From the NCBI GenBank assembly GCA_977017575.1, contig CDRNVI010000056.1:186001-250000 (forward strand): a stretch of 64,000 bases of DNA, given 5' to 3'. This stretch comes from Paramoeba atlantica (taxonomy: Eukaryota; Protista; Discosea). Under the pieces are notes generated by a model. It searched no databases, was not told the origin of the DNA, and saw only the letters and a program-made list of their open reading frames with translations. Of this stretch, positions 7,370 to 52,278 are shown piece by piece (the first letter of the stretch is position 1; each line of letters begins with the position of its first letter). The translations under genes and the position numbers were made by a program.

Positions 7370-8071
7370 ATGCAACGTGCCGTACGCGTGGCCGATGTCC
7401 CCTCTCGACCCAGTAAGGTGCGAAACGCGGTCCTCCCACAAGAATACAATATGTTTCGACTACTGAGTAACGCCAGTTTTTCTGAGGAATCATGGAACGA
7501 GAAAACGCCTGCTTGTGTGTGGAAACATGTGGAGTGTAGCGATGAGAGAGAGGTGACAAAGATACAATGGCGCAAATACGAAAGCGCATATGGAGACAAA
7601 GAGGAGAGAGTCTCTCTACAAGGTTCACTGCGATGGAATTTCCTACCCGACACTCTGATCTCCTTCGATGTTTCCTTGCAGGAGGTTTTGGAGGGGCACG
7701 TAGACTTGTCGATACTACCGGCAAGATTGAAAAAGTTTGACATTGGTAGCAATCAGTTTAGCGGAAGTTTGGATTTAACGCATTTGCCGTCTACTCTGAA
7801 AGATTTGCGTTTGGGATGGAATCGTTTTGAAGGTGAAGTTGATCTTACACGCCTCCCCGATACTTTGAAAAATCTCGACCTGTGTCATAATAGTCTGTGC
7901 GGAAAACCTGATCTCACAAAGCTTCCGAAGGCGCTAATGTGGGCCAGGCTCCTTGTCAACAATTTCGTCATACCTGACTTTATTCCGGAAGGTGTTCACA
8001 TCAAGCCGTATGTGAGTAGAAGACGACCCTGTGGATTCAATCCGTACAAAGTACGATATAACCATAAATGA
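7370..8071 (+). CDS. LRR protein, subfamily A
   Basis: N-cap SRPSKVRNAVLPQEY..SW..C.WKHVEC followed by about 5 LRRs. Confidence 0.88.
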   Translation: MQRAVRVADVPSRPSKVRNAVLPQEYNMFRLLSNASFSEESWNEKTPACVWKHVECSDEREVTKIQWRKYESAYGDKEERVSLQGSLRWNFLPDTLISFDVSLQEVLEGHVDLSILPARLKKFDIGSNQFSGSLDLTHLPSTLKDLRLGWNRFEGEVDLTRLPDTLKNLDLCHNSLCGKPDLTKLPKALMWARLLVNNFVIPDFIPEGVHIKPYVSRRRPCGFNPYKVRYNHK

Positions 8072-11878: not shown

Positions 11879-13414
11879 CAGGGGTGTAAATTTGTATGTG
11901 GTGGGGGTCTAAAATTCGTAAAATTTGGCCAATTGTGGAAAATAATAGCGCATTCGAGAGCTCTCGAACAGGGCTCATGAACGCAACATGGTCGCGATAG
12001 GCACAAGGGGGTATTGCCCCCTCGACAAAGGGCCCCCAAATGCGATTCGCAACTTTCTAAAGCACGGGAAAAAATAGAAAAATTAATAATAATTGCAGTT
12101 TCCGCCGTTCTTTTCAATCACAATACGGCATCTCTTACGAAAGCTCTTCATAGCGTTTTCAAAGGCTATAGAATGTGTCGTTTGAATATCTTGAAACGCT
12201 GCTTCGATCGCAATGATCAAATCTGTACGATTTCTAGGGGCCAAGCCATTTTTGAAATTGTCCATTATGGACCATAAATTTTCAACGGGCATGAGATCAG
12301 GTGATTTTGCTGGCCAAGGAAGAACAGTAATTCCTGTCTCTTGAAAGCTTGTCCTGGCCAGATTGTGCACCGTACAGTTATCCATTGCAATAACGCTAGA
12401 ACGGTGCCGCTTAAGGTAAGAAATTAACCCTCCACGCTTCTTCATGGCTTCATCAAAAATAGCCCCCGTCACTGTACCTCGGTTTCCTTGAGAACGAACA
12501 GAAGGAAAAACGTGAAGGTGAAACCCATGCTTAAGGCTCGCTGCCATCCAAACCATAACACCATTCCCCCCATGCCATGCATCCAATTCACCTTGCTGCT
12601 CCTTGGGAGCGTCAGTTTTGCGGCAGAGGTACGTGATGTGCCCCCCACTCTTCCCACAGGTAAATTTTTTTTCATCCATCCAAATGATATTGGACAGTTC
12701 CGCGTCACTCCACGTTAGCATTTCTTCACAGAAACGTACTCGTTTCTCTTTATGCACTGAGGTAAGTGCAGGGGATTTCCGGACTGTGCGCAAGACGATG
12801 CCATATGATTTCATGTGGGTCGTCAAAGTTTGACGAGAGCAAGTGAACCCAAGATTTTCGATTAACCGGTGGAGCTCACTCCAGCTCCTGATGCCATAGG
12901 GTTGATCTCGAACACCTTCGTCTATCGCTTTCAAAGCAGCCTCACGTAGTTCAGGTGTCACAGCGATGTTCGTTGGGGCGTGTTTCTCGTTCTTGGAGTT
13001 TACTTCTCCAGTATCACGATAGCGCTTTAGTTACAGTTCACAGTAGCTTCATGAACTTGAAAATTGCGCGCGGTTAGGGAAAAAGACTGTGTTGCTTCGT
13101 AATCGGCAACAAGAAGCATGCGCCAGCTTGCTTTTATGTGCCCAGGCGAAGAATAAGCCCTTTCGGAGTGCTTATGTTCCGGAGATCGTCCAAAATCCCG
13201 TCGTTGTGGCATGAATAAGGGCAAAAAACACAAAAATTGTGAAAATTGCAGGATTTCGTTTTCCAAAAAGCTAAGTTTTTTTATGTGCATAAGTCAATGC
13301 CTTTTCTTTCGCCAATACCAATTTAGAAGGTTTGTAAAATCGCTCAACTCCAAAAAAACATTTGAAGTATATTTTTTTGGAAAACAAAGGGGGGAAAAAG
13401 TGGGAGATTCCACC
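11879..13414 (-). mobile_element. Tc1/IS630-type DNA transposon (DD32E); one TIR present, the other truncated
   Basis: TA|CAGGGG TIR at 11879; transposase 12083..12961 plus frameshifted HTH exon 13027..13212; paralog at 58230..59408. Confidence 0.85.
12083..13212 (-). pseudogene. DDE transposase with a frameshift near 13030
   Basis: WMDEKKF, VMVWMA, MDNCTVH, WPAKSPDLMPVENLW; paired-like HTH (TARNFQVHEATV / KRYRDTG) split across two frames. Confidence 0.85.
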
Positions 13415-13484: not shown

Positions 13485-14177
13485 ATGAAGAGTTCTGTAC
13501 AAGCTGCTGATGTCCCATCTCGACCGAGTAAGGTGCGAAACGCGGTCCTGCCCCAAGAATATAATCTGTTTCGACTACTGAGTAATGCCAGTTTTGAAGA
13601 GGAATCATGGAGCGTGAAGACGCCTGCGTGTGAGTGGAAGTTAGTACAGTGCAACCCCGAGGGACAGGTCACAAACCTCAATTGGCGCAAAGACACAAGT
13701 CGGTATGCGAAGGAAGAGGAAAATGTCCGCATAAAAGGTGTACTGCGATGGGATTTTCTACCCGATACGCTGCTCTCTTTTTCTGCTTCAAATCAAGCGT
13801 TTTTGGAGGGGCACGTAGACTTGTCGGTACTACCCGCGGGATTAAAAAACTTTGATATTGGTACGAATCGATTCAATGGAGGGTTGGATTTAACGCATTT
13901 GCCATCTACTCTGGAAAAACTGGTTTTGAATTTCAATCTATTTGAAGGTGAAGTTGACCTTACACACCTCCCCGACGGTTTGAGAATTCTCGACCTTGCG
14001 TACAATACTCTGCGTGGAGAACCTGATCTCACAAAGCTTCCGGAGTTTCTGACGTGGGCCAGACTACTTCACAACAATTTCGTCATACCTGACGTTGTTC
14101 CGGCATGTGTTCATATCAAGCCGCATGTGCCAAGGAGTACTCGCCATTGTGGGTACAGCAGGTTTAAGAAGAAGTAA
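13485..14177 (+). CDS. LRR protein, subfamily A (divergent)
   Basis: Same N-cap and LRR pattern as 7370..8071. Confidence 0.88.
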   Translation: MKSSVQAADVPSRPSKVRNAVLPQEYNLFRLLSNASFEEESWSVKTPACEWKLVQCNPEGQVTNLNWRKDTSRYAKEEENVRIKGVLRWDFLPDTLLSFSASNQAFLEGHVDLSVLPAGLKNFDIGTNRFNGGLDLTHLPSTLEKLVLNFNLFEGEVDLTHLPDGLRILDLAYNTLRGEPDLTKLPEFLTWARLLHNNFVIPDVVPACVHIKPHVPRSTRHCGYSRFKKK

Positions 14178-28650: not shown

Positions 28651-29901
28651 TCGGAATGAAGAAACGCTAGGATTGGTCGCTCTGAAACGAGCCAAGCAAT
28701 TAGCTCTTAGTCATCAGTATCTGTGCCTCGAAGCATTTCTTGTCTCCTATACCAGGGCTCGATACTAGCCGAGCGGCGCTTATGTTTTTCTTGCCTATCA
28801 TCACATCACAGTAAGGTACAATCATTTACTCTTCTGCCATAACATCATACATTGTGTATGGCATTACACATCATTACCTACATGGTATCATACATTTGGT
28901 ATAGCATACATACATTGGTAGCGCATCATACAGTAGTACAAACAGTAGTATACTGTACATACTGTAGCGTATCTGTAGTATACTGTATAGTAGTCAACAT
29001 GTGCCAACGAGGCTATCCAATGCTGGTCGTGTATCGCATGGTGATGGACACGATCCCGTGAGGATACCCCTACGACCATTGATGCTCTCCGTCTAAGTGC
29101 TGGTCGTAATCTGTAAACTACATGTGATCCATAATTCTTGTCTCTTATTCCAGAGCTCGATCCTGCGCCTTGTCGTGGCGCTCTGGCTTAACACCCGCAA
29201 GAGTTAACCAAGACATGTAGAAACACATTTGAACATTTGAAACACATTTGAAAAATGTGTAATGGGGTAATAAGGGAAATAAAATTGAAATAAATCGCAA
29301 CAAAATCTGCGCCGCTTCGCGGCTCCTGTTTTCTCCTACTGACAAATAAGTAGGCGGTGTAAAATTACTACCTTCTCTGAGAACTGACAAATAAGTAGTG
29401 CTTTGTCTTAGTAGGCAGAGCAGTACCTTGAACTAGCACTTGTACTTTAACACCATGCAACGTGTCGTACGCGCGGTTGATGTCCCCTCTCGACCCAGTA
29501 AGGTACGAAACGCGGTCCTCCCACAAGAATACAATATGTTTCGACTACTGAGTAACGCCAGTTTCGCTGAGGAGTCATGGACCGAGAAAACGCCTGCTTG
29601 TGTGTGGAAGCATGTGGAGTGTAACGATGAGGGAGAAGTGACAAAGACACAATGGACCAGATACGAAAGGGTATACGTGTATATACAGGAAGAGAAGAGA
29701 GTCTCTCTAAAAGGTGCACTGCGATTGATTTTCCTACCCGACACATTGACCTCCTTCGATGCTTCCTTGCAAGAGGTTTTGGAGGGGCACGTAGACTTGG
29801 CGGTTCTACCGGCAGGATTGAAAACGTTTGACATTCGTTCGAATCAGTTCAGCGGAGGTTTGGATTTAACCCATTTGCCGTCTACTCTGGAAGATTTTCT
29901 T

Positions 29902-30030
29902 TAACGATAAAGATACAGTTTCTGTACCTTGTTGGTACATTTTGCTAGCCCTTCCTTTCTTTTCCCGGAAACGGGCATATTCTTACTTTTAAATGCCCGT
30001 TTCCGGCTGACGGCTAGCTGGAACTGTTCC
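29902..30030 (+). ncRNA. Spliced-leader RNA gene-like unit 1
   Basis: TAACGATAAAGATACAGTTTCTGTACCTTGTTG|GT resembles the kinetoplastid mini-exon 3' end with a GT donor at 29935; CCGGAA..TTCCGG stem follows. Confidence 0.7.
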
Positions 30031-30693
30031 TCTTTGTCGCGGAAGTAGGGGACGCACTTCGCACTCTTCACCCCTCCCCGGCTCGCTCTCTTCGAGTGAG
30101 CTTTCTTCCCTCCCCGGCTCTCTCCTTCTCGTGCTTTCTTCTCCCGGGAGCTATGGCCTCCCTTGAGGACCACTGGGCGTGCTACAGCGGGAGGACACGT
30201 TGTATGCGTGTATAGGGGATGCGAACTTGCACCCCTCTCTCCCTACATGCTGTAGCGAGTGCGGCGGTAACGGACCTCCCCATGATGCATCATGATCCAC
30301 GATAGACCATCTGACAGCATGAACCCACGGCTTGACCGTGTTGCAGCATGAACCATGGCTATACGTGCTGTAGCATGACCGATGGTCACGGTGGCCTCCC
30401 TTGAGGACCACTAGGCGTGTCCTCCGCCGACGAGACTCCCGGCTCTCCGCACCTGGGGGTCGCCCAGCTCTCTACACCCGGATTGCCCCCGAAACTGTAA
30501 TATGGGGATTACGCATCCGGCTCTCTGCACCTGCACATGACAACCGAGCTCTCTGCACCTGAGACCCCAGCTCTCTGCACCCGCACACCTCCGGCGAGGG
30601 CGAACCCTCACTTGATCCACCCGTCGCATGCGGGCACGGACTTTGTGAGCATAATCTCTGCACTATAAGTGCATGAACGAACAATGTGCATTG

Positions 30694-30820
30694 AAAAGAT
30701 GCAGTTTCTGTACCTTGTTGGTACTTTTTCCTTAGTTAATCCTTTCTTTCCCCGGCAACGGGCATACTCTTACTGTATTTTTATGCCCGTTGCCGGCCGG
30801 CACTAAGGTCGGAACTGTCT
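30694..30820 (+). ncRNA. Spliced-leader RNA gene-like unit 2
   Basis: AAAAGATGCAGTTTCTGTACCTTGTTG|GT with donor at 30721; helices covary with unit 1. Confidence 0.65.
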
Positions 30821-32009
30821 CTCTTGTCGCTGAAGCAGGGGACGCGCTTTCACCCCTTCACCCCTCCCCGACTCACTCCCCTGGAGTGAGTGTGCTTCCC
30901 CCTCTCGGCTTTTTTTCGACTTGTCTTTTTCCTCTCCGAGAGGGCCATGCGTCACGGTGGCCTCCCTTGAGGACCACTAGGCGTGTCCGCCGCCGACGAG
31001 ACTCGGTTCTCCGCACCTGGGGGTCGCCCAGCTCTCTGCACCTCGGCTCTGTCGCAGCTCTCTGCACCCGGATTGCCCCCGAAACTGTAATATGGGGATT
31101 ACGCATCCGGCTCTCTGCACTGCACATGATAACCGAGCTCTCTGCACCTGGGACGCCAGCTCTCCGCACCCGCACACCTCCGGCGAGGACGAAACCTCAC
31201 ATGATCCACCCGTCGTATGCGGGATAAGGACATGGTGAGTAAATCTCTGCACTATAAGTGCATGATAAAACACACCTTGGTCACAATAGTCTGTGCGGAA
31301 AACCTGATCTCACCAAGCTCCCGGAAGAGCTAACATGGGCCATGCTCCTTCACAACCTTTTCGTCATACCTGACTTTATTCCGGAAGGTGTTCGCATCAA
31401 GCCATATGTGAGAAAATAGCATCCACCCTGTAGATATAACCCATGCAGTCTGAAGAACCGACGTAAAAACATTTTTATATAAAATGCGGTACTTGGAGTA
31501 GGTAGACTGAAGTATTAAAGGAGTACTTCAGTAGTAAAACTACCACTCTATTTTAGAATACGACTTAATAAAATTTTCTACTGCGAAATATTACGGAGTA
31601 TAACACTAGAATCTACAGTGGTGATCAGCATCTTTTACCCCCCCCCGTACACGTCTTTTATTTTGTCCGATTTCGACCCAATCGTTCCGAATCCGAGTTT
31701 CTTTTCACTCGAGCGACCCCCTACCCCCCTTAGCCAGGTACGAGTCAAAAACGCTAATTACTGTAGCCCCCCGTTTGTAATGGCCTCGATTTTGCCCAAA
31801 TGAACCTATAAGGGGGTGAGGGGGGGAGCGATGGAAGATTAAAAGTTGGCACAGAAAGTGTCCTACATTTTGGAGCGAGAATCCAGGAATTATTCAACCG
31901 CTAAGTGGTCCTTGGAGGTCTGCCAAAGTAAAATGTACAGCACCACCCCGCGCCATACCTCGCAGAACCATGTGAAAATATCAAAATATTCAATACGGTG
32001 CAAGAAAAC

Positions 32010-33615: not shown

Positions 33616-34332
33616 ATGCAACGTGCCGTGCGCGCGGTTGATGTCCCCTCTCGACCCAGTAAGGTACGAAACGCGGTTCTCCCACAAGAATACAATATGT
33701 TTCGACTACTGAGTAACGCCAGTTTCGCTGAGGAGTCATGGACCGAGAAAACGCCCGCTTGTGTGTGGAAGCATGTGGAGTGTAACGATGAGGGAGAGGT
33801 GACAAAGATACAATGGCGCAAATACTTAAGCGCATATACAAAGGAAGAGGAGAGAGTCTCTCTAAAAGGTTCACTGCGATGGAATTTCCTACCCGACACA
33901 TTGATCTCCGTCGATGTTTCCTTGCAGGAGGTTTTGGAGGGGCATGTAGACTTGGCGGTACTACCAGCAGGACTGAAAAAGTTTGACATTCGTACGAATC
34001 AGTTCAGCGGAGGTTTGGACTTAACGCATTTGCCGTCTACTCTGGAAGATTTGAGTTTGGGATCCAATCGTTTTGAAGGTGAAATTGACCTTACACGCCT
34101 CCCCGATACTTTGAAAAGGCTCGACCTTGGTCATAATAGTCTTCGCGGAAAACCTGATCTCACCAAGCTCCCGGAAGCGCTAACATGGGCCATGCTCCTT
34201 CACAACCTTTTCGTCATACCTGACTTTATTCCGGAAGGTGTTCACATCGAGCCATATGTGAGAAAGAAACATCCACCCTGTGGATATAACCCGTACAGTC
34301 TGAAGAACCGACATAAAAACATTTTTAAATAA
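33616..34332 (+). CDS. LRR protein, subfamily A
   Basis: Full-length paralog of 7370..8071. Confidence 0.9.
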   Translation: MQRAVRAVDVPSRPSKVRNAVLPQEYNMFRLLSNASFAEESWTEKTPACVWKHVECNDEGEVTKIQWRKYLSAYTKEEERVSLKGSLRWNFLPDTLISVDVSLQEVLEGHVDLAVLPAGLKKFDIRTNQFSGGLDLTHLPSTLEDLSLGSNRFEGEIDLTRLPDTLKRLDLGHNSLRGKPDLTKLPEALTWAMLLHNLFVIPDFIPEGVHIEPYVRKKHPPCGYNPYSLKNRHKNIFK

Positions 34333-36052: not shown

Positions 36053-36442
36053 ATGCAACGTGCCGTACGCGTGGCCGATGTCCCCTCTCGACCCGGTAAG
36101 GTGCGAAACGCAGTTCTCCCACAAGAATACAATATGTTTCGACTACTGAGTAACGCCAGTTTCGCTGAGGAATCATGGAACGAGAAAACGCCTGCTTGTG
36201 TGTGGAAGCATGTGGAGTGTAACAATGAGGGAGAGGTGACAAAGAAACAATGGACCAGATACGAAACAGTATACGTGTGTATACAGGAAGAGGAGAGAGT
36301 CTCTCTAAAAGGTTCACTGCGATGGAATTTCCCGCCCGATACGTTGATCTCCTTCGATGCTTCCTTGCAAGAGGTTTTGGAGGGGCACGTAGACTTGGCG
36401 GTTCTACCGGCAGGATTGAAAAAGTTTGATATTCGTTCGAAA
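36053..36442 (+). pseudogene. Truncated LRR subfamily A gene
   Basis: Homology stops after KKFDIRS and runs into a dispersed repeat. Confidence 0.8.
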
Positions 36443-37770
36443 CATACTCTATACCCCCCTATACCTTCCCCCTGGAACCCCCGGGATCCCCCACCCGGGT
36501 CCAGCGAACTCCATAGCCGAAAAAACGCCAAGTACTGTATGCCATTGGTTTCTTTTGGGACCTGACTGGGTTTGCCTCGGTTTGCATTTTACTGGTTTCA
36601 GTCCTCTTAGATATACAATTTCTTTTCAGTGGGAATTTGCTACACCTGTTGCTTCGTATCTCCCTCGCCCCTTTAAGCCTGGGTTCTATAAACCCACGAA
36701 ACGTGATCAGCTGGCCACCCGCTGAAAAAATGGCCAACTCGTCACCCCCTGAAAAAGTTGCCTGCTGATCATCCCCTGAAAACGTGGCCGGCTGACCATC
36801 CCCTTAAAAAAGTGGCCAACTCACCACCCGCTGAGAAAGTGGCCAGCTGGCCATTTTTTCACGGGGTTGTCAGTTGGCCATAAAAAATAGTACTTCTTTT
36901 TCGTTCATTCGTTATGGCCCCGGCCACTGAAGCACGTTTTGAAGAACCAAATAGTTCGCGAACTTAGTTTAGGAGCTGAAAAAGATTCCCCAAATTTTGA
37001 AACAGTTGTAGTTTATGAAATTGGGGATGATAATGAATCGTCTTTGCGATTTTTTATTCCACGCCCGCACACTTGAGCGAGCCGCGTTCCGAGTCACGAT
37101 TTTAGTAAACAGGTTCTAAAAACTGCGTACTCACTACGGGGATAGTGAGTACTCACTACTCACTGAGACTGGGTAGTGATACTCCTAGCATGGGGATTAT
37201 GAAAAAAAAAATATTGCAGCTGTGATTTAATCTTAAGATTTTCTTTAGTTTCTATTAGCACTGTTTCGGAAATGATTAAGAAGGCAATACGTCTCTTCTG
37301 AGGCAAATTAACCCAGTATCTTCTCAACAAGAACGTAAGCGCATTCACACCCCTCACCCCACTCCTTACCACACTCCACAGCATCCTCGTCCAACAATTA
37401 TTGGGCCCCTGGTTTTTACCCCCCCCTCCTAGCGTTGCTTTTCACCAAAACCAGTCAACGCTAGGATAGGGGGGGAGAGTAAGTGGGGGGGACTATGACA
37501 AATAAGTGGGAGGCACAGTACTTAGAAATGCATTTAGAAGTACATTAAAAGTGTATTCAAAAAAATATTTGTTTTGCGCTATTTAGGTACTAATCCTCCC
37601 AAAAGACAATGAGTAACCACTGTGTGCACTATTCGAAGCCAAAACTGGATTTATTCGAAAATTCATTAAACGTCGATAAATACCCATCCATCTGCTGCCT
37701 ACATTTATGGTTCACATTCGACTAAAAGAGTCCCATTTTTCCTCTACCTCTCTTTCTCTTCTACCCCCCC

Positions 37771-45802: not shown

Positions 45803-45829
45803 AAAAGATACAGTTTCTGTACCTTGTTG
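45803..45829 (+). other. Isolated spliced-leader exon 3' fragment without GT donor
   Basis: AAAAGATACAGTTTCTGTACCTTGTTG followed by TACTATG; 42 nt upstream of the ATG at 45872. Confidence 0.75.
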
Positions 45830-45871
45830 TACTATGTTGTATAGAAATGATATGCGTCTGTAGCCCCTAAT

Positions 45872-47361
45872 ATGGCAAGCTCAGACGTTCCTGCACCAGC
45901 ATCACGGGGGGAACGACATGTGAGGATCAGGAGCACCACAAGTATGACATTGACAGCGTTCACGAGCATTAAGTCTGCGGCTGCCAGCTCTCTCGTCAAA
46001 CAGTTTTACCCAAATCCCGAGACCGGTCGCGCCGCCCTCACTAACGCGCTCGATAAAAACAATCCAGCCTGCGGACTCATGGTCGAATCGACCGAACTGT
46101 TTAGGTATAGAGTTCGACATCGAGGAGCCGATGAAGGATGGACCTATTATCCGAGCGTTGCTGACCTACATGCCAGGAAATTTTCTTCTACTTATTCCCG
46201 CGTCGACTCCCTCAGTCGTGCCCTCGTCAGATATTTTGAAGGATCTCCTCCCAAACTCCTGCCCTTTGAAATCGAATCATTGCACACAGACAGTCAAGAA
46301 GCAACATCGACACCAATCGCCACCGAATGCAAACACAGCTGTATAAACAAGGAAACATGTTCCCACGCATGCTGTAAGCGACATCTTACGGGCCATGCGA
46401 ACATCACTCCCAACGAAGAGCCCCGGACTGCGACAAGTAGCAATGCGGACACGAATATCGCTCCCAACGAAGAGCCCCGGGGTGCAACAAGTAGCAACGC
46501 CGACACTAGCGAGTGCAAACACCCCTGTCGCGACAAACGTACCTGTAAGCACTTATGCTGTAAACGTCACTTGCCTTCCCGCACTGCTGTAGAATCTCCA
46601 ACTGCTGAGCCACAGCATGAAGGCGGAACCTCGCAGCATAGCGAAACACAGGTGTCTTCTCGGGAAGTTGAAGAATGTAAGCATATCTGCACCGACAAAC
46701 GCGCATGCAAACACCTATGCTGCAAACGTCACCTATCGCTTACCCTTGTCCATCCCGACGATAGCTCTGGAATAGACGCCACCGACTCACATCGCGAATC
46801 GCGCGATTTACCCCCACCACGTCCAGCACAGGTCCCTCCTAGCTCCAACAAACCGAGAACCCGTTCAGTCCCTACACGCACAACTTATTACTCTGCTGGA
46901 AATGACAACACCTCTCCGGAAACAAGAACCGTCTACCACACACTGCACTCGATTGGTAGTACTGTCGGAACCTACATCATAAGCACCGCGCGTCAAGTTC
47001 TCGCTACAAGTACCACTCCGGGACACAAACCGCATCTCAGTAGAATAACTGAGCAAAACCTTTGTGGTAATGCCCAGATAGAAAACACAGAAGAACTTTC
47101 ACAAGTAACATGCAAGCTGAAACGGACACGACGGAAACGATCCGGCCCACGGAATGTAAGCATGTCTGCGGGAACAAGCGTACGTGCCTTCACCAGTGTT
47201 GCAAAAGACACCTGGATAGCGCCCCAACACAGCAACAGCGTGACACCGCGGCAACCCAGTACACGGGCGACGAACTCCCAGCACCGCTTCCCCCACCACC
47301 GCATGAACCTAGTGAAGTACACTTACCTTCCCCCACTACCCCGCAGTACGTCGAAATTTAG
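45872..47361 (+). CDS. Protein with four CxHxCxxKxxCxHxCCKRHL repeats; frameshift between 47071 and about 47150, truncated by a repeat
   Basis: Three repeats in ORF 45872..47401 and the fourth in ORF 47110..47361. Confidence 0.65.
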
Positions 47362-47624
47362 TGCTCTGAGAGCAAAAATACGCTCGCGCGACCCCCGCTA
47401 AATAGGGGGGGAAGGTGGTAGTTGTGGGGTATGGAGGCCTTCACGCAACTCCGGGGCCTTACCGGGAACAGAAATGAGACACTATGGTTCCAGTATTTAT
47501 AGCTCGTAACTACTTTTTTGTAAAGCACTCTTTAAGTGATGAAAAAGTCATTAAGGGGTAAAAATGTCTTTAAGGGGTAAAAATGTCATTAAGGGGTAAA
47601 AATGGCCCAAACGACGTATTTTAA

Positions 47625-49647: not shown

Positions 49648-50189
49648 AAAGACCAAGAGAGGACTCAAACCGCGCGATACCTCCACTTTGATTGTTCAGA
49701 AAGGAGCAAAAGGTAAGGGCTCCTTGAGCAAAGAGGGGATATCGAATTTTAAAGCCTTGCTTTAAAATATAGGTAACACCTATATTTTACAAGGCTTTTT
49801 ACACCTTTCCAAGTTCGATTTAAACTGATGTACCAGAGAGCTGTTGGTTGATGAAACGGAAATAGTATATACTACTATACTATTATGTAGTATGTATTAT
49901 GTATATAGTACACCTGGAGTTTTTCAGCGTTGGCAACTGGCCTACATGTTTAATTTGGAGAAAACGACATGTCCAAGGGTTTGGTTTAGCGACTACGACT
50001 CAGGTTCTCTTAAATCTGAAAACAGCCCTATTGGCAAATGGGAAAACCTGGAAAAAGCAGAAAGTCTTCTACCTAAAGCGTTGAGCGAAACACGCTCTTT
50101 GTCCTTAAATGACATCGGTGACGCGTACAGCCACATCACCCATGGTACTCTTGTTCCCTCGCGTCACAGGCCCTGCCAACTTCTGACTA

Positions 50190-50680
50190 ACAATGGATAC
50201 TCATATTCAATGAAGAAGAGAGATCTGTGTCTCACGCAGCGGCAAAAAGAGTACCGGATCAAATTTGTCGAGGTGATGCTCAGGCAAGACTCGACCTTAC
50301 TCGACCGTTTGGTTTTCTCTGACGAAACACCAATTTTAGCAGGAGATCTGAGCAAGAAGGCATGGCAGCACCCTGATGCTCCCGTCTTTATGGATCGCCC
50401 TGTCGTCTTTATGGATGATGGAGCCCCTGGGCATCGAGCGAAGGATACGATGCAGTGGTGGCAAGCTCGCGGGGATCTTACCGTGCTACGCTCACTGCAA
50501 GCAGAGGAAGATGGACCTTTTCTTCGTTGGCCAGCGGACTCCCCTGATCTCAACCCGATAGAGAATCTTTGGGACGCAGTAAAGCGCTTCAAAAATAAGA
50601 AGCGGCCACGAACCAGGCAAGAAAGCGAAGTGCGCCAAACTCCACGCGTCATTTCAAAAGCGACTCAGAATGGTTATTGA
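50190..50680 (+). pseudogene. Tc1/IS630-like transposase, internally deleted (D47E spacing)
   Basis: LVFSDET, FMDDGAPGH, WPADSPDLNPIENLW. Confidence 0.8.
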
Positions 50681-51124: not shown

Positions 51125-52278
51125 CTCTATTCGCCACACAGGTGTAATTCTCTGCGCGATGCACTTGAGTAGCACCCGCCACCGTCCTTGGTTACCGGAC
51201 GTGTATACGCACATGTTTTATTCAGTTGACATTGTTTTTCTCTTGTACTTTACTTACTTGTAGGTTCATGTTACACAAATAGCAGTCATTTAGATGGAGG
51301 CACAGGAGTAGGAAATCTACTCAAACGATAAAGATACCGTTTCTGTAAAAAGGTACCTTCTTCGAATGTTGGACACAACCCCGTAATGGGGAAGTAAGTT
51401 CGGAACCTCTTCCTGGTTCTAACAACATTCATCAAAAGGCTGTTTTCCTGTGTGGGATGACGATGCTAGTTGTAAATTACATTCTTGCATTGTAAACCAC
51501 CCCTTCCTCTGTGCAACCACTATCAACAAAGTGAAAAATTGGTTATGCCAAAAAAAATGTCACTTTGCGGGAAAATTGAAAGTTACGCCCCCTCGCAAAC
51601 GAGTACAATGGGGTTGTCATGGAAAAAAAGATTTTCCTGAATAGAACTCTTCCTAGAAACGCCGAATAACCACTTTTTACACAGTTTCAATCATTTTTTC
51701 GAGGTACATAATACCGGGCAAAACAGGGTGAACGGGGGTGTAATTGAATCGCTAAGCATCTCGGGGAACAGCTACCGAAACAGCTGCCTGAGTCATGAAC
51801 GAGACAGCTATCTAGGGGACCGAGCTAGAAAATAACTACTCCTTGAGTATCTAACTAGCAATTGAATTGATAAGACGAACTAAAATTTACTATACACTGT
51901 AAAAGTAACTGACTCAGAACCAACCAACTGACTCAGTAAGGTTTCTAAATGATGAGCGCACTTGCGGGTTAACGTACTAGTCGGATACTTTTACTAGTAA
52001 TTTACTATTGGACTTATTACATGTATGTGGCTATCTGGTGACTCAAATCACTCACACACTCACTCACTTATCAATTGCTTATTCCTGGATCTCACTCGAT
52101 ACGCAAGAGGGTACGCAGCAAACGATAACATGTAGAGATTTTTATGATAAAAAATACGCCATCTATGATAATGCACGATCTGCATGAAATACAATGTATG
52201 AAGAATATATGAAAATAAAAATCCAAATATACGTCCTAACTATACGATACCCAACGAGGGTTCTACTGACCTAGGGTG

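Follow-up and report, generated by a model that had tools for sequence, protein, structure and literature searches.

A chimeric insertion of spliced-leader-headed retroposons in a leucine-rich-repeat gene

Site-specific retrotransposons with a restriction-like endonuclease (RLE) are known to target multicopy sequences, either non-coding or RNA genes, namely ribosomal DNA (rDNA), spliced-leader (SL) exons, transfer RNA (tRNA) and small nuclear RNA (snRNA) genes, microsatellites and telomeres (PMC4640811). R2 carries the RLE motif set CCHC, RH, PD..E, K..KY and RG, and its integration is described by a two-subunit, two-cleavage model (PMC4838377); elements of the CRE clade of trypanosomatids insert at one fixed position of the SL RNA genes (PMC12278014). 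Here we analyzed a 1.37-kb insert that interrupts a leucine-rich-repeat (LRR) open reading frame (ORF) at positions 29899-31272 of a 64-kb stretch of contig C56 (hereafter the window; contig CDRNVI010000056.1 of assembly GCA_977017575.1, Paramoeba atlantica). We found the insert to be a head-to-tail chimera built from three dispersed retroposon families and, judging by its sequence and that of its relatives, it is very probably a compound insertion of retroposons, placed at the site to which an R2-like system of long interspersed nuclear elements (LINEs) of the RLE type homes within LRR sequence. An initial annotation of the window had proposed either a mobile SL-RNA-derived element or divergent SL RNA classes dispersed outside an array.

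The insert and the families it is built from

The host genome spans 45.7 Mb in 248 contigs, and the window contains many LRR genes, Tc1-type transposase ORFs and retroelements. Repeat analysis bore out the annotated order X1-Z-Y1-X2-Y2 within the insert, including the SL-like heads followed by GT in X1 (36 nt of SL) and X2 (26 nt). X1 (29899-30150) and X2 (30695-30950) were about 75-78% identical to each other and Y1 (30385-30676) and Y2 (30951-31265) were 85% identical, with Z occurring once within the window. The features of the split gene and its insert are as follows.

29440-29897, plus strand: 5' part of the split LRR gene, an ORF matching residues 1-146 of paralogue P0002
29899-30385, plus strand: A-type retroposon copy with the full 36-nt SL head, without a 3' tail
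29899-29934, plus strand: SL exon in X1, from CTTT to CCTTGTTG, identical to the 36 nt preceding the 5' untranslated region (UTR) and ATG of retrocopies
29905-30039, plus strand: X1 5' domain, with a long-range helix between the SL head at 29905-29922 and 30020-30039 (predicted fold and pair counts)
30041-30109, plus strand: X1 3' domain, three nested helices including GGCUCGCUC / GAGUGAGCU (predicted fold and pair counts)
30154-30174, 30392-30412 and 30958-30978, plus strand: conserved hairpin motif TGGCCTCCCTTGAGGACCACT, three copies versus none expected
30386-30684, plus strand: Y1, the 3' part of a B2-type copy, with the tail ...GCACTATAAGTGCATGAACGAACAA
30685-30694, plus strand: filler of 10 nt, TGTGCATTGA, read from the sequence
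30695-31272, plus strand: complete B-type retroposon of 579 nt (X2 at 30695-30950, Y2 at 30951-31272), ending ...CTCTGCACTATAAGTGCATGATAAAACA(C)
31274-31419, plus strand: 3' part of the split LRR gene, matching residues 171-237 of P0002

The A-type copy has a donor-like GT at 29935-29936 and stops 7 nt past an internal tail-like GCATGA motif (GCATGACCGATGG), with the final ~122 nt of its family missing. This lack of a tail follows from 28 other copies that matched 29902/29940-30385 at 93-99% identity, diverged from the window at 30385 and then ran on into their own tail, mutually alike for ~122 nt more; A copies elsewhere end ...CTCTGCGCCACGAGCGTATGA, after which comes TCATAACC or TATCAT. Within Z (30300-30385), the tail-like motif (C/T)AGCATGA(A)CC is present three times, and its third occurrence is found 7 nt before the end of the A copy, as if used as an alternative 3' end. 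The first base of Y1 corresponds to 30951 of the B copy, and the B2 tail ...GCATGAACGAACAA also terminates another copy, at locus L048, beside flanking LRR sequence. The filler that follows appears to resemble the 3' half of the terminal hairpin plus TGA. As for the B-type copy, its X2 head holds only the last 26 nt of the SL (30695-30720, with one A-to-G change) plus GT, and all of 28 other B copies share its terminal base while their starts vary. The earlier description of the insert as unit-length thus holds insofar as the insert stops on its right side at the 3' terminus that is constant in the B family. Once elsewhere, on contig C31, the locus was found complete with its flanks, at 98.4% identity, making the chain older than a segmental duplication.

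Dispersed relatives were abundant. X1 together with Z (29903-30385) matched dozens of contigs at 93-100% identity, a first look across the genome yielded 822 candidates, with 40 copies scored at 91-100% identity, and Y2 as the query yielded 120. Full-length matches to a covariance model of X numbered at least 150 and were spread over more than 60 contigs. Two more families, C and D, have the head, X module, hairpin motif and tail layout in common with A and B; the GGCCTCCCTTGAGGACCACT motif occurs three times in the insert, with the hairpin motif found in families A, B, C and D. Elements of the A, B, B2, C and D families are non-coding, 0.58-0.75 kb in length (579-750 nt) and without an ORF of their own, those present across them being short, on both strands and unconserved. 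They follow one plan: the head comes from the SL, a 5' module (X) of conserved structure comes next, and a body that varies leads to the 3' tail.

Family 3' ends were constant and 5' ends ragged. Among 51 independent copies the SL head started at positions 7-13 in 30, thereby keeping 24-30 nt of SL (mostly 26-29), deeper in the head in 10 and beyond the head in eight, and the full 36-nt head was seen in a single copy, that of the A type in the window. Genome-wide, the full head followed by GTAC was exact only in the window and its C31 duplicate, with about four near-matches. The upstream flanks of A and B copies were mutually unrelated, abortive head pieces were stacked at the 5' junctions of loci L013 and L055, and head-to-tail chains of C to A, C to B and LINE to A, with 0-10 nt of filler at the joints, were found elsewhere. 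The truncated 5' ends, the stacked abortive heads and the tail-to-head joints together point to reverse transcription, and the annotated mobile element is hence recovered as young families, with copies 93-100% identical on many contigs. Separately, X-module matches at 2371, 5763 and 9155 on G000:C88 have an exact spacing of 3,392 nt, which is that of a tandem unit with an X-bearing element.

The LRR target site and the partner LINEs

The halves of the split LRR gene were searched separately against paralogues. The left target edge, ...GAAGATTT, lies after base 2 of the codon for the eighth repeat residue (Leu), and the right edge, ACCTTGG, after base 1 of the codon for the ninth residue of the next repeat. 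A 23-residue repeat kept in three intact paralogues of the window (33616-34329, 7370-8068 and 13485-14174) is absent from the split gene, amounting to a loss of 71 nt. These 71 nt make up one LRR unit exactly, the two breaks falling at the homing position in each of two adjacent repeats; two breaks inside one repeat would, by the same geometry, remove only two bases. No target duplication was present at the insert junctions, and the annotated loss of about 70 nt without duplication was accordingly refined to 71 nt by three paralogues. A reading with no target deleted, for which the ambiguous protein alignment of the repeats left room, was rejected upon nucleotide comparison with the paralogues. 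Breaks at equivalent positions of adjacent repeats fit the two-subunit R2 model (PMC4838377), and the two strands may thus have been cut at equivalent sites of neighbouring repeats. A close paralogue of the split gene (36053-36562, P0003-like) diverges after residue ~127 into unrelated sequence and was probably broken by a different insertion.

The same phase was seen at other loci. The LxxNxFxG motif begins at codon 0-1 of the 3' flank in 17 of 50 independent copies, versus 1.3% of random positions drawn from the LRR-rich window, and by a looser reading by eye an LRR context is found for ~60% of copies. LINEs and passengers alike insert between residues 8/9 and 10 of LPxxLxxLxLxxNxFxG, with LINE copies at L025 and L039 and a LINE-A chain at L014 in the same LRR site. 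Flanks of the elements were LRR genes, LINE ORFs or other DNA, and not SL genes. At L010 (C69:308325-311568), a D-type and an A-type copy occupy the same phase of two consecutive repeats in one LRR gene, ~70 nt apart.

The partner LINEs gave RVT_1 and zf-RVT matches. At L014 the LINE is represented by its C-terminal 473 residues, which carry zf-RVT and in which the CCHC, RH, PD..E, K..KY and RG motifs, the set listed for R2 (PMC4838377), are readable. Its 3' UTR ends ...ATCTTAAAAGATATGATATCAT and is joined directly to an A head, the chain then continuing into LRR sequence. At least 90 LINE copies were found in the genome, in classes 38-100% identical to that of L014, many with ORFs of 1,500-1,860 aa and the longest of 1,862 aa. 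The element tails share a motif order, namely a CCCG..CGGG-type hairpin, TCTCTGC, a small hairpin, ATGA and 6-10 nt, which also terminates RLE LINE 3' UTRs, and both tail motifs are common to the passengers and the 3' UTRs of three RLE LINE classes. In the closest pair, a C45 LINE (TCTCTGCCTTATAAAGGTATGATAAA) and B (TCTCTGCACTATAAGTGCATGATAAA), the last ~28 nt are near-identical except for the stem of the small hairpin. Furthermore, an X head lies within 160 nt downstream, on the same strand, of four LINE 3' ends (C23, C60, C12 and C51), versus ~0.05 expected by chance according to our own arithmetic. Being short and non-coding, with a LINE-like 3' end and 5'-truncated dispersed copies, A, B, B2, C and D would qualify by sequence as LINE-dependent non-autonomous retroposons, i.e. 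short interspersed nuclear elements (SINEs) in the broad sense.

That X could be the 5' UTR of the LINEs was rejected upon comparing the coordinates of X and LINE matches, by which no high-scoring X lies upstream of intact LINE copies. By coordinates, X lies ~5.2-5.5 kb upstream of the LINE 3' end in two cases, on C23 and C71. A PDB sequence search with the LINE C-terminus gave no match, and metagenome scans, from which records near this genome may be left out, gave neither a relative of the LINE protein nor an exact match to the SL followed by GTAC.

The spliced-leader head and the X module

With regards to the leader itself, a 25-nt SL core has ~570 copies in the genome, mostly heading retroelement ORFs. 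At 30 of 30 sampled sites the exon alone was present, ending ...CCTTGTTG and followed by a 5' UTR and ATG; the poly(A) of an upstream copy often stands directly before, and several of the ORFs behind a retrocopied SL are retroelement ORFs. Since all sampled retrocopies carry the exon alone, the exon boundary is fixed, and the 36-nt head of X1 is as complete as any retrocopied SL. This comparison with the leader on retrocopied transcripts, as had been suggested together with the initial annotation, showed the 36 nt of X1 and the exon of the canonical SL RNA genes to be identical to it. Loci L061-L090 (contigs C1-C3) hold hundreds of retrocopies headed by the full SL, many right behind the poly(A) of an upstream copy; several of their opening ORFs match LsmAD weakly, below the cut-off of Pfam, and one family is a 5,093-bp tandem series on C1.

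A pattern search recovered 32-38 copies of the canonical SL RNA genes, with the exon as in the elements followed by GTATGAGAAGCTTCGAAC..., in arrays of ~2.56 kb period on C97 and C107 and in smaller groups on C11, C74, C24 and C3. On C11 and C24 there are pairs of canonical SL genes 297 nt apart, and on C74 the spacing is stretched to ~7.3 kb by LINE copies that bear antisense A insertions (L021 and L022).

These genes bear on the view that the elements are true SL-RNA-derived SINEs, in which an SL RNA gene gave rise to the whole of X, exon and 'intron' alike, and a LINE supplied the tail. Kinetoplastid SL RNAs pair the exon with an internal complement, and in the predicted fold X likewise pairs its exon CAGUUUC internally. 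GTA comes after the exon in both the elements and the canonical gene, X is not obviously LINE-derived as it is not seen upstream of intact LINEs, and a head, a body and a LINE-like tail fit the SINE definition as given in PMC5786205 and PMC4494074. We nonetheless consider this origin unlikely. Past GTA, the canonical intron has no colinear similarity to X, so that exon plus GTA is the sole common part; canonical genes carry GTATGAGAAGCT... and stand in arrays, whereas X carries GTAC... and is dispersed. The complement of the exon is AGAAGCU in the canonical genes, immediately behind the donor, while in X it is the distant GGAACUGU, and no Rfam family matches X, of which most copies hold just 26-29 nt of exon. 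A closing helix common to X and canonical SL RNA was also considered and was rejected, because the canonical GGGAACTG is half of a local 11-bp hairpin (CCCCGGTTCCC / GGGAACTGGGG). The term SL-RNA-derived is therefore apt for the head, exon plus GTA, and not for the rest of X.

As for the fold of X, the predicted 5' domain of X1 encloses a splice-site hairpin (29923-29928 / 29934-29939), a GCUAGCC helix (29944-29950 / 30012-30018) and a 14-bp hairpin (29965-29978 / 29993-30006), and both of the perfect 14/15-bp hairpins were recovered by repeat analysis. X1 and X2 gave similar predicted folds, with z-scores of -9.4 and -6.6 versus shuffled sequences. In an alignment of 33 copies fitted to the covariance model, from which the pairing counts come, pairing was kept in 94.7% of cells, versus 35-46% with slid partners, and changes on both sides were seen at eight pairs, five of them in the 7-bp GCUAGCC/GGCUAGC helix. 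The compensatory changes amount to essentially one split, roughly that of the A/D versus the B/C families. All four helix pairs quoted in the initial annotation were thus present and predicted by folding, and its hairpin motif was indeed found three times (starting at 30154, 30392 and 30958). Its phrase 'fully covarying', however, is right with regards to pairing and compensatory changes but overstates the number of independent events, which in this model-fitted alignment is about one split. Rfam searches, of the whole window at the gathering threshold and of the insert region to E = 10, gave no SL, ribozyme or other credible family, and a 5' self-cleaving ribozyme has the weak negative that no ribozyme family was among the Rfam matches to E = 10 and that the predicted fold is a plain multibranch. 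X would most likely serve the element RNA, in protein binding or handling of its 5' end, rather than trans-splicing.

The junction between head and X also varies in a specific manner. Immediately behind the SL exon, precisely GTACATTTTGCTAG is missing from copies of the A background and GTACTTTTTCCTTAG from copies of two B backgrounds, 19 copies in all genome-wide, as at loci L025, L026, L028 and L029 (A background) and L037, L053 and L060 (B background). The lost GT..AG segment is 14-15 nt long, and it is missing in three sequence backgrounds, all three of which have spread. That such a loss, with GT at one border and AG at the other, occurred three times in parallel speaks for a splicing-type event and against a random deletion, and the most plausible cause would be trans-splicing of the SL onto the AG. 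At G000:C82:11814-13444, a B head without the GT..AG segment also precedes, by ~250 nt and on the same strand, the C-terminal 473 codons of an RLE LINE; the arrangement is either a chimera of X with a LINE or a LINE with an internal deletion.

Other SL pieces occur in the window outside the insert. An isolated fragment, (CTCA)AACGATAAAGATACCGTTTCTGTA, lies at 51324-51347 and is followed by unrelated sequence. At 45803-45833, the SL exon, reduced to its last ~27 nt, runs directly into non-intron sequence, 39 nt before an ORF (45872-47401; 509 aa, no Pfam match), and the two together look like a retrocopy of a spliced RNA. The window further contains ORFs with the Tc1/mariner-type domains HTH_Tnp_Tc3_2 and DDE_3 (12083-12961 and 49844-50680) and a VIPER-like element that showed no similarity to the elements of the insert.

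Origin of the insert and comparison with known systems

A compound insertion by the LRR-homing LINE system could have arisen in the following manner. The LINE endonuclease would nick the bottom strand at its site in repeat n+1, and reverse transcription primed at the nick would run on B RNA to the B 5' end. The enzyme would then add a short abortive piece, jump to the 3' end of B2 RNA and, at the next jump, take up an A RNA that had ended at the internal tail-like motif, which would be copied up to its complete SL 5' end. Cutting of the top strand at the equivalent site of repeat n would remove exactly one repeat (71 nt) without target duplication, and the whole locus would later have been duplicated to contig C31. 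Several observations speak against this proposal. An empty allele of the split gene was not found, and template jumping in a single event is unprovable from one allele; ~40% of copies lie outside recognisable LRR sequence, and most copies begin around SL positions 11-13, for which the proposal does not account. In addition, the L014 LINE and A have only the last ~10 nt and the hairpin layout in common, any pairing of LINE class with passenger would be tentative, and intact LINE copies have no high-scoring X match upstream.

A broader reading joins these processes to the donor-less copies: the elements would be passengers of LRR-specialised RLE LINEs, cutting at two sites in neighbouring repeats would let insertions delete whole LRR units, and the element RNA would take part in SL trans-splicing. 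We regard this combination as no more than tentative. If it were true, a large LRR gene family would be under active remodelling by retroelements, the repeated and exact loss of GT..AG would be a trans-splicing footprint, and the SL head would be a working interface with the trans-splicing machinery and not a passive relic.

The chain could instead have been built by successive independent insertions and later deletions, without a template-jumping event. The two insertions in consecutive repeats of one LRR gene at L010, and a LINE and a B copy one site apart at L039, would agree with such a history. However, neither the tail-less A piece nor the headless B2 piece should be primable alone, no LRR sequence lies between the pieces, and other loci repeatedly show tails joined to heads with 0-10 nt of filler, making this course improbable.

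That the elements are dispersed functional variants of SL RNA genes, forming a second class of SL donor outside the array, deserves very little credence. Such genes would be in line with the ~140 non-canonical copies that keep the exon core and GTA exactly (178 pattern matches, of which ~32-38 are canonical) and with a fold conserved through compensatory changes. On the other hand, the first ~10 SL bases, including the cap-proximal part, are gone in all but a handful of copies, the copies have no upstream sequence in common, homogeneous canonical arrays exist, the 19 donor-less copies have still spread, and a pyrimidine-rich candidate Sm site is paired in the predicted fold. Compared with the kinetoplastid SL RNA gene, the elements have the full exon in one of 51 copies, no common upstream promoter sequence, another intron and no array. 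The insert is hence not a set of SL RNA genes, and the 'divergent SL RNA classes' of the initial annotation fall to canonical arrays, head truncation, unrelated upstream flanks and multiplied donor-less copies. As to a fragment of a tandem SL-type array moved at the DNA level by recombination, the X-Y-X-Y look of the insert is suggestive, but with no X-Y array found, a canonical unit that differs and measures ~2.56 kb, and other copies being single units with truncated 5' ends, it is scarcely credible.

A literature search did not find SL-headed, LRR-homing elements described, nor the exact SL string. By comparison with the canonical genes, the many 'SL + GT' sequences are no additional SL RNA genes, which matters for annotating SL genes and trans-splicing in this genome. 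If the proposed compound insertion is correct, it would also supply a simple route by which a large LRR family of a free-living kinetoplastid could lose repeat units and have genes inactivated.

The system resembles R2 and its non-autonomous relatives with internal deletions (SIDEs) in several respects. The partner LINE encodes a reverse transcriptase, a CCHC motif and, by its motif set, a PD-(D/E)XK-type endonuclease. Integration goes to a specific site, removes very little of the target and adds no poly(A); the RNA is structured at either end, chains form by jumps from the end of one template to the end of the next, and the passengers carry the 3' end motifs of the LINE. Unlike with R2, the target is a protein-coding LRR repeat and not rDNA, and no ribozyme like that of hepatitis delta virus was detected in the elements. 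The head, moreover, is a piece of spliced leader, and in contrast to SIDEs the passengers are not demonstrably simple internal deletions, X not having been found in the LINEs compared by coordinates. The CRE clade (SLACS, CZAR and CRE1/2) likewise consists of RLE-type kinetoplastid LINEs tied to the spliced leader, and its members cut the exon at nt 11/12, about where most of the element heads start here. The present elements differ in carrying the SL at their own 5' end and inserting into LRR genes instead of SL genes. NeSL-1 of nematodes is another RLE LINE associated with spliced-leader genes (PMC4640811), but NeSL targets SL1 exons, not coding repeats, and does not have the leader as its head.

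SINEs with tRNA, 7SL or 5S heads, and the class with snRNA heads (PMC4494074), are similarly short, non-coding and LINE-dependent; their tail carries LINE 3' motifs and their head derives from a small RNA of high abundance. In the elements studied here, however, only the exon and 3 nt are demonstrably SL-derived, no internal promoter for RNA polymerase III is evident, and the 3' end is a hairpin with ATGA, not an A-tail or simple repeat. The relic SLs in dinoflagellate retrogenes are also genome-integrated DNA copies of SL-bearing RNAs, but those derive from spliced mRNAs and hold the exon only, whereas A and B elements retain GTA and end in a tail of LINE type, not in poly(A). If borne out, homing to one codon phase of a coding repeat, together with SL-headed non-coding passengers, would widen the list of targets known for RLE retrotransposons.

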